A stretch of DNA of 64,000 bases from Macrostomum lignano (taxonomy: Eukaryota). This document shows, piece after piece, positions 22,901 through 25,900 of the stretch (the stretch's first letter is position 1; the number at the start of each line of letters is the position of its first letter). The position numbers and the translations under genes are program-made. The stretch is taken from the NCBI GenBank assembly GCA_002269645.1, contig NIVC01000782.1, positions 124,001-188,000 on the forward strand, in the 5' to 3' direction. The notes beneath the pieces are model-generated. The model ran no database searches. It worked only from the letters and a program-made list of their open reading frames with translations, and had not been told where the DNA came from.

Positions 22901-25900
22901 CAGAAATCCGGGCACTCCTCAGCCGCATGGCCAGCATCTCCCTCCCCGTCAGCGGCTCCTCGGTCGCAGGCGGCGCCGTCCCAGTCGACGACGAGCTCCT
23001 CGCCCGGCGACACCCCGCAGCCGACGGCGAACAGGCCGCAGCGGAGGTCGCCGGCGCCGCCAGCTGTCGACCGGCGCTCGAAACGCGCGTTCGCTCGCCG
23101 AGGCCGCCGACAAGCCGCCGGAGGAGCCGCCAGCCGGGCCGCCAGGCCGCCGACGTCCAGCAGGCGGCGCCAGTCGAGCCGCAGCATCAGCGGCCTGACG
23201 GAGGCGGCGGGTGCACCCGAGCGGAGCAGCAGCCGCAGTCGGCGCCGGGCCTCGAGCGGCTCCACCGGGTCGCCCGGCAGGTCGCAGGGCAGCGGCTGGC
23301 CGGCCGAGAGGCGACCGCCGGGGCAGCCGCTTGGCGCCAGGCCGACCGCCCAGGAGGCGCCGCCGCCTGCGTCCAGGCGGGGCCGTTTGAAGACGGCCAG
23401 TTCGGAGCGCTGATTGGCTGGCCTGCGAAATGGGGGGGCAGTGGGATTGGGGGTGGCAATTGGCATGGAGCTGTGCGAGTTCAGTGCGGCATTTTAGGAG
23501 TGACAGAGTGCCATTTTGAGAGTGACAGTCTCAGAGTGACACTTAAAGAGTGACGGTGTCAGAGTAAAACTTTGAGAGCGGAGTGTCAGAGTGACACATT
23601 GAGAGTGACAGTCTCAGAGTGACACTTTGAGAGTGGCAGTGTCAGAGTGAGACATTGAGAGTGACAGTGTCAGAGTGAGACTTTGAGAGTGACAGTGTCA
23701 GAGTGAGACATTGAGAGCGGCAGTGTCAGAGTGAGACATTGAGAGTGACAGTGTCAGAGTGAGACATTGAGAGCGGCAGTGTCAGAGTGAGACATTGAGA
23801 GCGGCAGTGTCAGAGTGACACTTTGAGAGTGACAGTGTCAGAGTGAGACATTGAGAGTGACACTGCCAGAGTGCCATTTTCACACAGCCCCATTGAGCCA
23901 GCCGAACCTGGAGAGCCGCTGGTTGAGGCAGCCGGGTCCGCAGGCGGCCGGGTGGCACTCGATGCCCGCCAGCCGGTTGGCGCAGCCGTCCAGCTCGCCG
24001 CAGTGGCGACCCCGGCGCTGGCAGTCACATTTGGCCATCAGGCTGGAGGCTGAGGCTTCCGCCTGCTGCAGCTGCGGCTCCTGACTAGCGGGAGCGGCTG
24101 GCTGAGGCTGGTCAAAGTCAGCTGACACCGGCTGCGGCACGGCGGAGAGCTCGCCGAGAAGGCGGCGGGCGTCCTGCCGGTCTCGGTCTCTGTGGGGGTT
24201 CGTGAGGAGCCTGGGTGAGGCTGGGATGAATAGGAGATGAAGCATCTCAGAGAGGCTGGGATGAATAGATGAAGCATCTCAGGGAGGATAGGATGATTAG
24301 GAGATGAAGCATCTCAGGGAGGCTGGGGTGAATAGGAGATGAAGCATCTTAGAGAGGCTGGGATGAATAAGAGATGAAGCATCTGAGTGAGGCTGGGATC
24401 CGTAGATGAAGCATCTCAGAGAGGCTGAGATGAATAGATGAAGCATCTCAGAGAGGCTGGGATGAATAGGAGATGAAGCATCTCAGAGAGGCTGGGATGA
24501 ATAGGAGATGAAGCATCTCAGAGAGGCTGGGATGAATAGGAGATGAAGCATCTCAGAGAGGCTGGGATGAATAGGAGATGAAGCATCTCAGAGAGGCTGG
24601 GATGAATAGGAGATGAAGCATCTCAGGGAGGCTGGGATGAATAGGAGATGAAGCATCTCAGAGAAGCTGGGATGAATGAGATGAAGCATCCCAGAAGCTA
24701 AAACAACGAGCAGATGCACACCTGAGTCTCCAGGCCTCCTGAGCCAAGGCCACCCCCTCGTTGAATTTGTCCATCAGCTCAGCCGTCTCAGTCCCAGCCG
24801 ATCCGGCAGCGGCAGCCGCGGACTCGCCCAGATCGCCGTCCTTGAAGGGGAACAGGCGAGCCAGGGACACCCAATAGTACTCGTCAGTGCCGAAGAAGCG
24901 CACGGGAAAAGTGCCCAGCTGCCTGCCGAGTCGCTGGATGTTCTCAGGCGCGTGCTGTGCCAGCAGGATCTCGCAGGGCCACCAGCGGAACGGGCCGACC
25001 TTCACCCAGACGATGTCGCCGCATCGAGGCTGCCAGCTGAGCCGGCAGGGGTGCAGGTGAACGGAGCCGCAGCTGGGGCGGCTGATGGAGAGTCGGGCAG
25101 GCAGGCGATGTGGTAGGAGGCTGGGCAGCGCTGACAGCCCGACAGGCCGCCGGAGCGAAGGCAGGCGAAGCACCAGGAGGTGTTCACGTGACGCGTGGCC
25201 GTGGCTGAGCAGCTGGAGCGCCGCTTTGAGGAGTCGGAGAGCAGGTGGTCCGGGCAGATGATGCAGGCTGGGGTCAGGAAGTGGCTGCCGGCTGGGACAC
25301 AGCGAGGGCTGCTGTGGTAGGCGGCTGGACAGCGGACACAGCTGACCTGGTGGGGACAGTGGCTAGATCAGGTGAGACAGTGGCTAGATCAGGTGAGACA
25401 GTGGCTAGATCAGGTGAGACAGTGGCTAGATCAGGTGAGACAGTGGCTAGATCAGGTGAGACAGTGGCTAGATCAGGTGAGACACTGGCTAGATCAGGTG
25501 AGACAGTGGCTAGATCAGGTGAGACAGTGGCTAGATCAGGTGAGACACTGGCTAGATCAGGTGAGACACTGGCTAGATCAGGTGAGACAGTGGCTAGATC
25601 AGGTGAGACAGTGGCTGGATCAGGTGAGACACAGTGAGAGCACATGACACCCTGAGCAACATGAGACACAGTGAGAGTAAACATGAGACACAGTGAGAGC
25701 ACATGAGACTCAGTGAGAGCACATGAGACACACTGAGCACATGAGGCACACTGAGCACATGAGATACACTGAGCAGATGAGGCACACTGAGCACGAGGCA
25801 CACGGAGCACATGAGACACACTGAGCACATGAGGCACACTGAGCACATGAGGCACACGGAGCACATGAGACACACTGAGCACATGAGACACACTGAGCAC

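Follow-up and report, generated by a model that had tools for sequence, protein, structure and literature searches.

SETD5, KMT2E and yeast Set3 are non-catalytic SET-domain proteins that act on chromatin. Among NSD proteins, the short isoforms NSD3-short and MMSET-I are made without the SET domain but keep the reader modules, perform no methylation, and are thought to serve as adaptors. The adaptor role of the short isoforms is reportedly described by Shen et al. (2015) in Mol Cell. A further example is SET-24 of C. elegans, whose SET domain is catalytically incompetent even though the protein still acts on chromatin (PMC12886896). Herein, we describe a gene family of Macrostomum lignano, Mlig028383, that is probably a duplicate of an NSD gene specific to the Macrostomum lineage, in which the SET domain appears to have decayed neutrally, the reader domains have been kept by selection, and the product is likely a non-catalytic reader or adaptor.

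The window analyzed in this study is a stretch of 64,000 nucleotides of contig NIVC01000782.1 (assembly Mlig_3_7), which carries the NSD-like gene BOX15_Mlig028383g3 (g3). This gene is one of three genomic copies of Mlig028383 (g1, g2 and g3) that reside on separate contigs, and all three carry the same exon 5 with the same splice sites. The original prediction, made from the letters of the sequence, had called a degenerate SET exon at 22901-23422, and this call was borne out at its exact position, on the minus strand, and with canonical splice sites. The 522-nt exon 5 (window 23422..22901) is bounded by the acceptor tttcgcag|G and the donor TG|GTGAGT, and both of its ends are in phase 2, with AG|G specifying Arg767 and TG|G specifying Trp941 in the numbering of the full-length copy. 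It is placed between the AWS exon and the exon for a C-terminal PHD-type finger, and its phase joins the two exactly. When read directly off the translation, the exon 6 finger has a Cys4-His-Cys3 pattern, and a copy of exon 6 gives a weak Pfam PHD match (18.8 bits).

Fragments related to exons 5 and 6 are found elsewhere in the window (see the table), including a partial duplicate of the SET exon that was recovered by blastn as two segments (22841-22934 vs 609-702 at 92.6% identity and 23009-23046 vs 719-756 at 89%). Every intron at the Mlig028383 locus is filled with minisatellite sequence. We rejected the notion that such introns are a peculiarity of this paralog, as the introns of the canonical NSD gene of the same organism are alike.

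Table. Features of the Mlig028383g3 locus, in window coordinates
Feature	Position	Strand	Basis
Exon 1 as annotated (5'-partial), PWWP1	28068..28415	-	Pfam PWWP E=3.8e-12
Exon 2, low-complexity linker and PHD fingers 1-3	26661..27707	-	tblastn and exact block mapping
Exon 3, PHD4 and PWWP2, with 1-bp deletion in C-run	24722..25346	-	Pfam PWWP E=2e-19 (2.1e-19)
Exon 4, linker and AWS zinc cluster CDCx6Cx5CxNRx5ECx4Cx3CxN	23908..24189	-	Pfam AWS
Exon 5, degenerate SET and post-SET remnant	22901..23422	-	Splice sites and phase, BLASTP vs canonical SET, motif losses
Exon 6, C-terminal PHD-type finger and stop codon	16936..17137	-	Acceptor cacag|G, G being the third base of Trp941
Extra terminal PHD exon copy with in-frame stop (FHAE*ARLL)	12837..13034	-	Translation
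Truncated duplicate of SET exon 3' end, internal deletion, broken frame	609..756	-	blastn
Extra terminal PHD exon copy, 99% identical to that of g1	250..447	-	Sequence comparison

The SET ancestry of exon 5 is evident from alignments rather than from profiles. Together with the AWS, exon 5 aligns along the whole AWS-SET region of NSD1 (PDB 6kqp/3ooi) with E=2e-5, a score that comes mostly from the AWS. When exon 5 is searched alone, phmmer returns no NSD or SET protein from PDB at E<=10, and no Pfam family, SET included, is matched at E<=1. BLASTP against a canonical flatworm SET, encoded on the related invertebrate contig L001, yields E=1e-7 at 30% identity, and a tblastn search of the window with the canonical M. 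lignano NSD reaches exon 5 at E=0.024. At E<=10, this tblastn search matches only two exons of the window, those for AWS and for the degenerate SET, such that no alternative, canonical SET exon is present there. These results agree with the alignment along the whole NSD SET that had been proposed by eye. Judging by these alignments, exon 5 is the remnant of an NSD SET domain.

The residues that define a working enzyme have been replaced throughout this exon. The SAM-binding GxG motif has changed from GRGWG to GASWA, the NHxC motif from RFMNHSC to RFERRST, and the catalytic Tyr motif from ELTFNY to ELVVDW, which exchanges the conserved Tyr for Trp. The post-SET zinc site is likewise gone, as the Cys of NHSC is now Thr (C322T) and exon 5 has no CxCx4C pattern. 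All of these losses had been anticipated, although the 16-residue stretch originally offered as the replacement of NHxC is instead an insertion just upstream of it. A comparison by eye of the last 12 residues of exon 5 with the canonical CQCGAENCSGFLG suggests that only the last post-SET Cys is kept, in a stretch that MAFFT aligns differently and ambiguously. In a set of 17 canonical NSDs, 48 columns of the SET reach a conservation of 90% or more; Mlig028383 keeps only 21 of them, and the losses include G226S, G228A, N319R, H320R, C322T and Y350W; by the same count PWWP2 keeps 17 of 21 columns and AWS 10 of 11. With the GxG, NHxC, catalytic Tyr and post-SET zinc sites all lost, the protein is not expected to be a canonical lysine methyltransferase.

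Exon 5 is unusual in composition, with 77% GC and 53% of its residues being Gly, Ala, Arg or Pro. Period-3 structure remains, with GC fractions of 0.84, 0.64 and 0.84 at codon positions 1, 2 and 3. The exon is open and in phase as was first reported, but this is weak evidence for constraint because a 173-codon frame at 77% GC stays open by chance with P ~0.14-0.15, and two of the six frames of exon 5 are fully open.

A search of the genome for a canonical NSD paralog, which had been proposed as a check, was successful. This gene, BOX15_Mlig026212g1/Mlig014479 (PAA63624.1, model P0022, contig NIVC01001827.1), is a homologue of human NSD1, NSD2 (WHSC1) and NSD3, retains RGWG, RFMNHSC, ELTFNY and CQCGAENCSGFLG, scores 95.8 bits against Pfam SET, and is listed as 'Neoblast, stringent' in Supplementary Table 2 of an earlier study (PMC5816591). 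Because a full canonical NSD exists in the same genome, Mlig028383 appears to be a diverged, lineage-specific duplicate rather than the NSD of the organism. The two genes share the order of PWWP1, PHD fingers, PWWP2, AWS, SET position and C-terminal Cys/His finger, are 81% identical in PWWP1 and 66% in PWWP2, and have all PHD and AWS zinc ligands in common. Mlig028383 lacks the Pfam SET and C5HCH matches of its canonical counterpart along with the RGWG, RFMNHSC, ELTFNY and CxCx4C motifs. The two also differ in gene layout, with no intron position in common (five introns in Mlig028383 vs four), and in SET coding GC (78% vs 56%). As to the C-terminal finger, the Pfam C5HCH profile matches canonical P0022 and not the g1 model P0010, and the gene in the window has a generic PHD-like finger at its end.

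The rate at which the SET has changed was assessed by counting replacements on the Mlig028383 lineage relative to the canonical lineage, with L001 as the outgroup. The resulting ratio for SET is 45:7 (p=7e-8), compared with 6:4 for PWWP1, 23:14 for the PHD fingers, 11:1 for PWWP2 and 6:1 for AWS, and PWWP2 and AWS are thus also accelerated on the Mlig028383 lineage. When the paralogs are compared, SET has a dN of 0.87 and PWWP1 one of 0.13, with dS ~0.7-2.1; once normalized to dS, the rates of PHD, PWWP2 and AWS are rather high (~0.4-0.6). Among the 45 SET replacements, GC at codon positions 1 and 2 goes up in 27 and down in two, whereas in the other domains it goes up in 17 and down in 16. 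Conserved SET residues with GC-rich codons survive in 11 of 16 cases, compared with two of 16 for conserved FYMINK residues (p=0.003). From these patterns, the SET of Mlig028383 looks to be evolving near-neutrally and with a GC bias. A purely regional process of GC-biased conversion is not supported, as the GC-raising replacements are found only in the SET exon and, on reading the sequence by eye, the flanking introns are visibly less GC-rich.

The remainder of the protein has fared differently. NSD-family membership and the retention of PWWP, PHD and AWS residues, both of which had been claimed at the outset, are confirmed by Pfam searches with the full-length g1 model P0010, which detect two PWWP domains, PHDvar_NSD, PHD and AWS but no SET. 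The PWWP domains encoded in the window are recognized with E=3.8e-12 and 2.1e-19 (111.9 bits in full-length g1), and the PHD fingers of g1 score 36.4 bits (PHDvar_NSD) and 27 bits (PHD). The AWS scores 25.2 bits on the exon ORF, relative to a cut-off of 23.3, and falls just below it (22.1 bits) on full-length g1. When zinc-ligand columns are defined as Cys or His residues common to the canonical paralog and the outgroup, 31 of 31 are kept in PHD1-4 and eight of eight in AWS (39/39 together), vs none of two in SET.

Comparison of the genomic copies reveals the selection that acts on these domains. In the structured domains other than SET, synonymous differences outnumber non-synonymous ones 16:1 between g1 and g3 and 21:3 between g1 and g2, corresponding to pN/pS of 0.02-0.05 (binomial p=2e-9 and 1e-10, respectively). 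The PWWP, PHD and AWS reader domains of Mlig028383 are under purifying selection. Given that the copies differ mostly by synonymous changes and that 39/39 zinc ligands are kept, as opposed to the decayed SET, the gene seems to be functional and its SET to be evolving neutrally. For the SET exon itself, dN/dS among the three copies is uninformative, as g1 and g3 do not differ over its 522 nt, and g1 and g2 differ by one synonymous substitution and one 1-bp deletion. The flanking introns were also considered as a neutral yardstick and were rejected because the differences between them fall within minisatellite arrays that are shifted in register. Searches of protein collections, both word-indexed and by exhaustive HMMER, yielded no orthologue from another Macrostomum species, and matched only the M. 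lignano copies, generic NSDs, Logan contig DRR639055 and a Protopolystoma fragment.

The copies differ in whether they could encode the whole protein. Copy g1 (P0010) has an uninterrupted 1007-aa ORF over six exons with intact splice sites, in which exon 5 is joined to the terminal PHD exon without a break in frame. In g3, a C-run of exon 3 near 25048 has lost one base in comparison with g1 and g2, a 1-bp deletion that shifts the frame, and the NCBI model P0004 stops at the resulting shifted-frame stop. If this deletion is real, translation of g3 ends before PWWP2, AWS and SET, leaving the intact ORF at g1, and the copy in the window may be a very recent null. Copy g2 carries two 1-bp frameshifts, located in exon 1 and in the SET exon. 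All of the frameshifts in g2 and g3 are 1-bp deletions, and the two contexts that were read are CCCCC to CCCC and GGG to GG. The BOX15 models in GenBank derive from a genome-guided RNA-seq transcriptome (PMC5730564), and exon 5 is spliced in frame in two of them (P0009 and P0010). With its length of 522 nt, skipping of exon 5 would likewise preserve the frame. Among the rows listed from literature full text and supplements, none gives an expression value for Mlig028383 in particular or evidence of its protein.

These frameshifts raise the prospect that the whole family consists of pseudogenes, or of genes becoming so, with the dead SET as the most advanced decay that is tolerated thanks to the canonical NSD. 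The NCBI models are truncated to match the frameshifts, the ML2-assembly model P0003 follows, at the C-run, the shifted frame that is seen in the window, and both the acceleration of PWWP2 and AWS and the dS-normalized rates noted above would fit such a course. We nevertheless consider it unlikely, as the synonymous excess between copies rules out neutrality in the structured domains (p ~1e-9), the zinc ligands have all survived while the SET decayed, and the g1 reading frame is intact. Moreover, two of the 1-bp deletions are in short homopolymer runs, and the deletions may reflect errors in the PacBio consensus of this redundant assembly (PMC5730564). Errors of a larger kind, in which the GC-rich block is mis-assembled or is not a real mRNA exon, might be suspected from the highly repetitive PacBio assembly, from introns composed entirely of minisatellite, and from the chaotic older ML2-assembly gene models (P0002, P0021 and P0023). 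This explanation is very improbable given that the exon is present with the same consensus splice sites on three separate contigs, is included in two independent RNA-seq-guided models, and links its neighboring exons in exact phase.

An opposite concern is that the diverged SET is still a folded module, serving as a non-catalytic surface for binding nucleosomes or partners, as an autoregulatory element or, less likely, as an enzyme with an unorthodox cofactor. Core beta-strand motifs persist in exon 5 (in 13- and 17-residue stretches), its period-3 GC structure remains, and it hardly varies among the copies. AlphaFold2, when run on an NSD alignment of 67 sequences, gives pLDDT values of 61-87 for the N-terminal half of the SET and 70-81 for the GLFAV strand region, and the best PDB matches of the model are the SET domains of NSD1, NSD2 and NSD3 (E ~2e-6, target-normalized TM 0.53-0.56). 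However, that alignment is made of canonical NSDs and drives the result, and even so the NHxC-loop replacement and post-SET fall below 50; with a shallow 18-sequence alignment, most of the whole AWS-SET is below 50. Retention of residues also tracks codon GC and not functional class, the 45:7 asymmetry and a dN of 0.87 vs a dS of ~1.3 fit near-neutral change, and no profile detects a SET. Persistence of a folded module thus seems improbable to us, even more so than wholesale pseudogenization.

The evidence is best accommodated by domain-specific decay after gene duplication. An NSD H3K36 methyltransferase gene would have been duplicated in the Macrostomum lineage to found the Mlig028383 family, after which the SET and post-SET would have been released from selective constraint. 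Roughly neutral drift under GC-biased substitution pressure could then have produced the Gly/Ala/Arg/Pro-rich sequence of the former SET, while purifying selection would have held the two PWWP domains, the PHD fingers, the AWS and the C-terminal PHD finger. The protein is predicted to bind methylated H3 and DNA as well as H3 tails through its PWWP and PHD domains, with the ex-SET segment acting mainly as an in-frame linker and catalysis presumably left to Mlig026212/Mlig014479. Going by domain content, its most likely mode of action is that of a non-catalytic chromatin reader or adaptor. The reader-only scaffold or dominant-negative modulator of H3K36me2 that the original prediction had envisaged is likewise conjectured from domain content. 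A more ambitious version, to which we subscribe only tentatively, is that a dedicated non-catalytic NSD paralog was kept through a recent genome duplication to read the same marks as the stem-cell-enriched canonical NSD and to modulate H3K36 methylation or compete with it. Such a paralog, in the order PWWP-PHD-PWWP-AWS, ex-SET linker and PHD, would be a gene-level counterpart of NSD3-short, in which GC-biased neutral drift erased the SET and the frame was preserved for the sake of the C-terminal finger.

Mlig028383 clearly illustrates how decay can be specific to one domain while selection acts on the rest of the gene, with GC-biased substitution having converted a catalytic domain to a linker rich in Gly, Ala, Arg and Pro. 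Provided that the protein is produced and functional, the gene is a natural separation-of-function allele of NSD that has all the readers and no catalysis. Furthermore, M. lignano is a transgenesis-capable regeneration model with a stringent-neoblast canonical NSD, and if our interpretation is true it would permit a direct test of NSD readers without methylation. The practical weight of the finding is modest, as the paralog is restricted to one lineage, the organism also has a normal NSD, and the function proposed derives from domain content.

Among the described systems, SET-24, SETD5, KMT2E and Set3 differ from Mlig028383 in family and architecture, and their SET domains are recognizable and conserved as domains, whereas that of Mlig028383 is below profile detection and apparently neutral. 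NSD3-short and MMSET-I are similar to Mlig028383 in that they are NSD-derived and keep their readers, and they are unable to methylate. These isoforms arise by alternative transcript termination of a catalytic gene and have no SET at all, whereas Mlig028383 is a separate gene that carries its decayed SET in frame, together with an AWS and a C-terminal PHD finger.

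The 64-kb window carries an NSD-derived paralog, and a canonical NSD is encoded elsewhere in the genome. An exhaustive HMMER search recovered the canonical paralog that the original prediction had proposed to look for (P0022; BOX15_Mlig026212g1 on contig NIVC01001827.1 of the same assembly as the window, with further copies named Mlig014479). This protein matches the Pfam families PWWP, PHD_NSD, PHDvar_NSD, AWS, SET (95.8 bits) and C5HCH, and carries the motifs RGWG, RFMNHSC, ELTFNY and CQCGAENCSGFLG. Its gene has been listed as a trans-spliced WHSC1 homologue of the class ‘Neoblast, stringent’ (Supplementary Table 2, PMC5816591). 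This makes the gene in the window a divergent duplicate and not the animal's NSD. An alternative canonical SET exon, which the original prediction had named as evidence against its reading, was not detected within the 64-kb window by tblastn with the canonical NSD. None of the five intron positions of the window gene is shared with the four of the canonical gene, which could mean that one gene arose as a retrocopy and gained introns afterwards, or that introns have turned over heavily. Nearly every intron of both paralogs is almost wholly made up of a minisatellite array peculiar to it (periods, 18-37 bp).

Coordinates of the NSD-like gene and of other features (window positions unless stated)
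Feature	Coordinates	Strand	Content
Exon 1	28415..28068	minus	PWWP1
Exon 2	27707..26661	minus	linker and PHD1-3
Exon 3	25346..24722	minus	PHD4 and PWWP2
Exon 4	24189..23908	minus	AWS
Exon 5	23422..22901	minus	SET remnant, 522 nt
Exon 6	17137..16936	minus	C-terminal PHD finger and stop
Minisatellite introns, NSD-like gene	27741-27991, 25355-26649, 24217-24695, 23516-23873, 22404-22878, 17223-19130
Minisatellite introns, canonical NSD (positions in locus L005)	14036-15730, 16218-18454, 18974-19984
Terminal PHD-finger exon copies	250-447, 12837-13034, 16936-17137	minus	one with in-frame stop
Shortened SET-exon piece	609-756		adjoins one terminal-exon copy
Long minisatellite	2563-5000		adjoins IAP-like ORF
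IAP-like ORF	5182-6024	minus	BIR and C3HC4 RING; about 66% G+C
Retroelement-like segment	7164-10510	plus	three ORFs
Antisense ORFs, intron 5	19745-20996	plus	154 and 164 aa
30-bp tandem repeat	20134-20416		between and partly overlapping the antisense ORFs
Mi-2-type gene	about 30000-44800	minus	CHD3/4/5-type remodeller

Exon 5 had been delimited exactly, as both borders coincide with splice sites (acceptor tttcgcag/G, donor TG/GTGAGT). Its first base finishes the Arg codon of the upstream exon, its translation ends AAEECPDFW, and its last two bases open a Trp codon finished downstream. The exon is flanked on either side by minisatellite arrays and is unusual in composition (77% G+C; 53% Gly/Ala/Arg/Pro; 4.6% Phe/Tyr/Met/Ile/Asn/Lys). 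That it is open and in phase is true, but carries little weight because at this composition a frame of 173 codons would be open by chance with P ~0.14-0.15; two of its six frames are fully open.

Searched alone, exon 5 matches no Pfam family at E<=1 and, with phmmer, no SET protein in the PDB at E<=10. When joined to the AWS domain, it aligns across the entire NSD1 AWS-SET (E=2e-5). By BLASTP, it matches the canonical SET of L001, a related invertebrate contig (Logan run DRR639055), over 110 residues (E=1e-7), and tblastn with the canonical M. lignano NSD hits precisely exon 5 (E=0.024 for the window). Given these matches, and a position after the AWS exon and before the C-terminal finger, homology to the NSD SET is secure, as had been proposed. 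The blocks in common are AVFK, GDxV/IxxxEAxxRL, MLxLDxxRxxDxG, RF and GDLRxGLFAV...GEEL.

The remnant lacks every catalytic and cofactor motif. Relative to 17 canonical NSDs taken from the exhaustive HMMER search, only 21 of 48 SET columns conserved at >=90% are kept, versus 17/21 in PWWP2 and 10/11 in AWS. This alignment bears out the losses that the original prediction had read by eye: the GxG motif (G226S, G228A), the NHxC motif (N319R, H320R, C322T) and the catalytic Tyr, which is replaced by Trp as ELTFNY becomes ELVVDW. The Tyr of EYVG and the Pro-Asn after NHxC are lost as well. One detail did not hold, in that RFMNHSC corresponds to RFERRST and the 16 residues that had been placed opposite the motif are an insertion just upstream. 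The post-SET pattern CxCx4C is likewise absent from exon 5, whose end pairs by eye with the canonical CQCGAENCSGFLG, the last Cys alone being kept, while MAFFT aligns this stretch otherwise. The lost residues are those that in SET enzymes build the SAM pocket and the pseudoknot, as well as the catalytic and post-SET zinc sites. Judged from these replacements, canonical methyltransferase activity of the product is very unlikely.

The remainder of the protein has fared differently. Pfam finds two PWWP domains, PHDvar_NSD, PHD and AWS on the full-length copy, in agreement with the predicted retention of reader domains, and finds neither SET nor C5HCH. With L001 as outgroup, replacements on the branch leading to the window gene since its split from the canonical NSD, compared with those on the canonical branch, number 45:7 in SET (binomial p=7e-8), 6:4 in PWWP1, 23:14 in PHD1-4, 11:1 in PWWP2 and 6:1 in AWS. 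Of the 78 SET columns in which the outgroup matches the canonical gene, 33 (42%) are retained by the window gene. It also keeps the shared Cys/His columns at 31/31 in PHD and 8/8 in AWS versus 0/2 in SET, and the chance of retaining all 39 zinc ligands at the SET rate is ~2e-15. Between the paralogs, dN rises from 0.13 in PWWP1 to 0.87 in SET, with dS about 0.7-2.1. Because about 87% of the SET changes fall on the window-gene branch, omega for SET there is, as a rough estimate, close to 1.

The SET replacements also have a strong compositional direction. At codon positions 1 and 2, 27 of the 45 changes raise GC and 2 lower it, whereas the other four domains pooled have 17 that raise it and 16 that lower it, and SET coding GC is 78% versus 56% in the canonical gene. 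Conserved G/A/R/P residues, with GC-rich codons, survive at 11/16 versus 2/16 for F/Y/M/I/N/K (AT-rich; Fisher p=0.003). GC3 is 0.66-0.88 across all exons of the window gene; GC1 (0.84) and GC2 (0.64) are raised in the SET exon only. The similarity to SET that survives in exon 5 thus appears to be, for the most part, the expected residue of a GC-biased neutral process. G+C varies strongly along the window, from 32-37% (46000-53000 and 58000-64000) to 56-67% (4000-6000, 8000-10000 and 22000-28000), and the GC-rich parts coincide with exons and GC-rich minisatellites.

Three genomic copies, which carry sufficient differences beyond the 3′ end, permit a view of more recent selection. The window copy, g3, is annotated in M. 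lignano assembly Mlig_3_7 as BOX15_Mlig028383g3 (P0004) on contig NIVC01000782.1, of which a 23.4-kb locus matches window positions 15002-38415 at 100% identity, and the same assembly holds g2 (P0009, contig NIVC01000221.1) and g1 (P0010, contig NIVC01001486.1), the last with an uninterrupted ORF of 1007 aa. Presumably, they go back to the recent duplication of the genome and the redundant karyotype described for the DV1 line (PMC5730564). Within structured non-SET domains, g1 and g3 differ by 16 synonymous and 1 non-synonymous changes (pN/pS 0.02, binomial p=2e-9 versus neutrality) and g1 and g2 by 21 and 3 (pN/pS 0.05, p=1e-10), two comparisons that are not independent because g2 and g3 have many differences from g1 in common. 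The low-complexity linker gives a pN/pS of about 0.35-0.4. The low ratios in the structured domains show strong purifying selection on the conserved reader and zinc-finger domains since the copies diverged. In the SET exon, substitutions (none for g1-g3, one synonymous for g1-g2) are too few to inform on selection, and flanking introns are unusable as a neutral standard because their copy differences sit in minisatellites.

All disabling differences among the copies are three 1-bp deletions, at window position 25048 and at 9038 and 16733 of paralogous locus L004. In g3, the deletion shortens a C run relative to g1 and g2 (CCCCC to CCCC) at ~25048, in the part of exon 3 that separates PHD4 from PWWP2, and P0004 terminates at the resulting stop; a genuine deletion would leave the SET exon of this copy untranslated. 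In g2, one deletion lies in exon 1 and one within the SET exon (GGG to GG). The g3 deletion and the latter fall in short homopolymer runs of a redundant, PacBio-based assembly. Model P0003 of the ML2 assembly is read in the shifted frame seen in the window, but both assemblies were built on the same PacBio data (PMC5730564). The deletions are either residual consensus errors or null alleles that arose very recently in redundant copies, and the copy in the window may be defective. The RNA-seq transcriptome behind the GenBank BOX15 models was genome-guided (StringTie/TACO plus de novo transcripts; PMC5730564), so the splicing of exon 5 into P0009 and P0010 has transcript support, which is not copy-specific.

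A CHD3/4-type gene lies upstream of all three copies. In the window, this Mi-2-type neighbor directly precedes the NSD-like gene and comprises a double PHD, a Helicase_C and a DUF1086-type part (annotated product, 1875 aa); it recurs at each of the paralogous loci L002, L003 and L004 but is absent beside the canonical NSD (L005). The terminal PHD exon also occurs, sometimes several times, in the unrelated-looking models P0020, P0021 and P0024, and this 3′ module looks like a segmental repeat, either dispersed or in tandem. Between two of its copies in the window lies the retroelement-like segment, with a SAP-domain (N-terminal) ORF, an RVT_1 reverse transcriptase ORF and a third ORF that has no Pfam match. 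The two ORFs antisense to the NSD-like gene have no Pfam match at E<=0.001.

An AlphaFold2 model from an 18-sequence alignment gives pLDDT 78-90 for PWWP2 and mostly <50 for AWS-SET. A run on AWS-SET-PHD only, with 67 sequences, gives 68-82 for AWS, 61-87 for the N-terminal half of SET and 70-81 for the GLFAV/GEEL strands, with <50 in the NHxC-loop replacement (residues 149-178) and post-SET (207-232). The best Foldseek matches of this model are NSD1/2/3 SET structures (E about 2e-6, target-normalised TM 0.53-0.56). Because the alignment consists of canonical NSDs, the model indicates at best that the exon 5 segment is compatible with a SET fold, not that it folds.

We propose that this paralog, apparently lineage-specific and coexisting in the genome with a normal NSD, has a non-catalytic function. 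Its product would be a chromatin reader or adaptor, and the former SET segment might persist mainly as an in-frame spacer that holds the C-terminal finger on. Selection leaves a clean signal that differs by domain, and the system lends itself to experiments. In the part of the literature covered, no NSD paralog whose SET has decayed was found described. SET-less NSD isoforms such as NSD3-short exist, and SETD5 and KMT2E are non-catalytic SET proteins. C. elegans SET-24 is another non-catalytic protein of this kind (PMC12886896).
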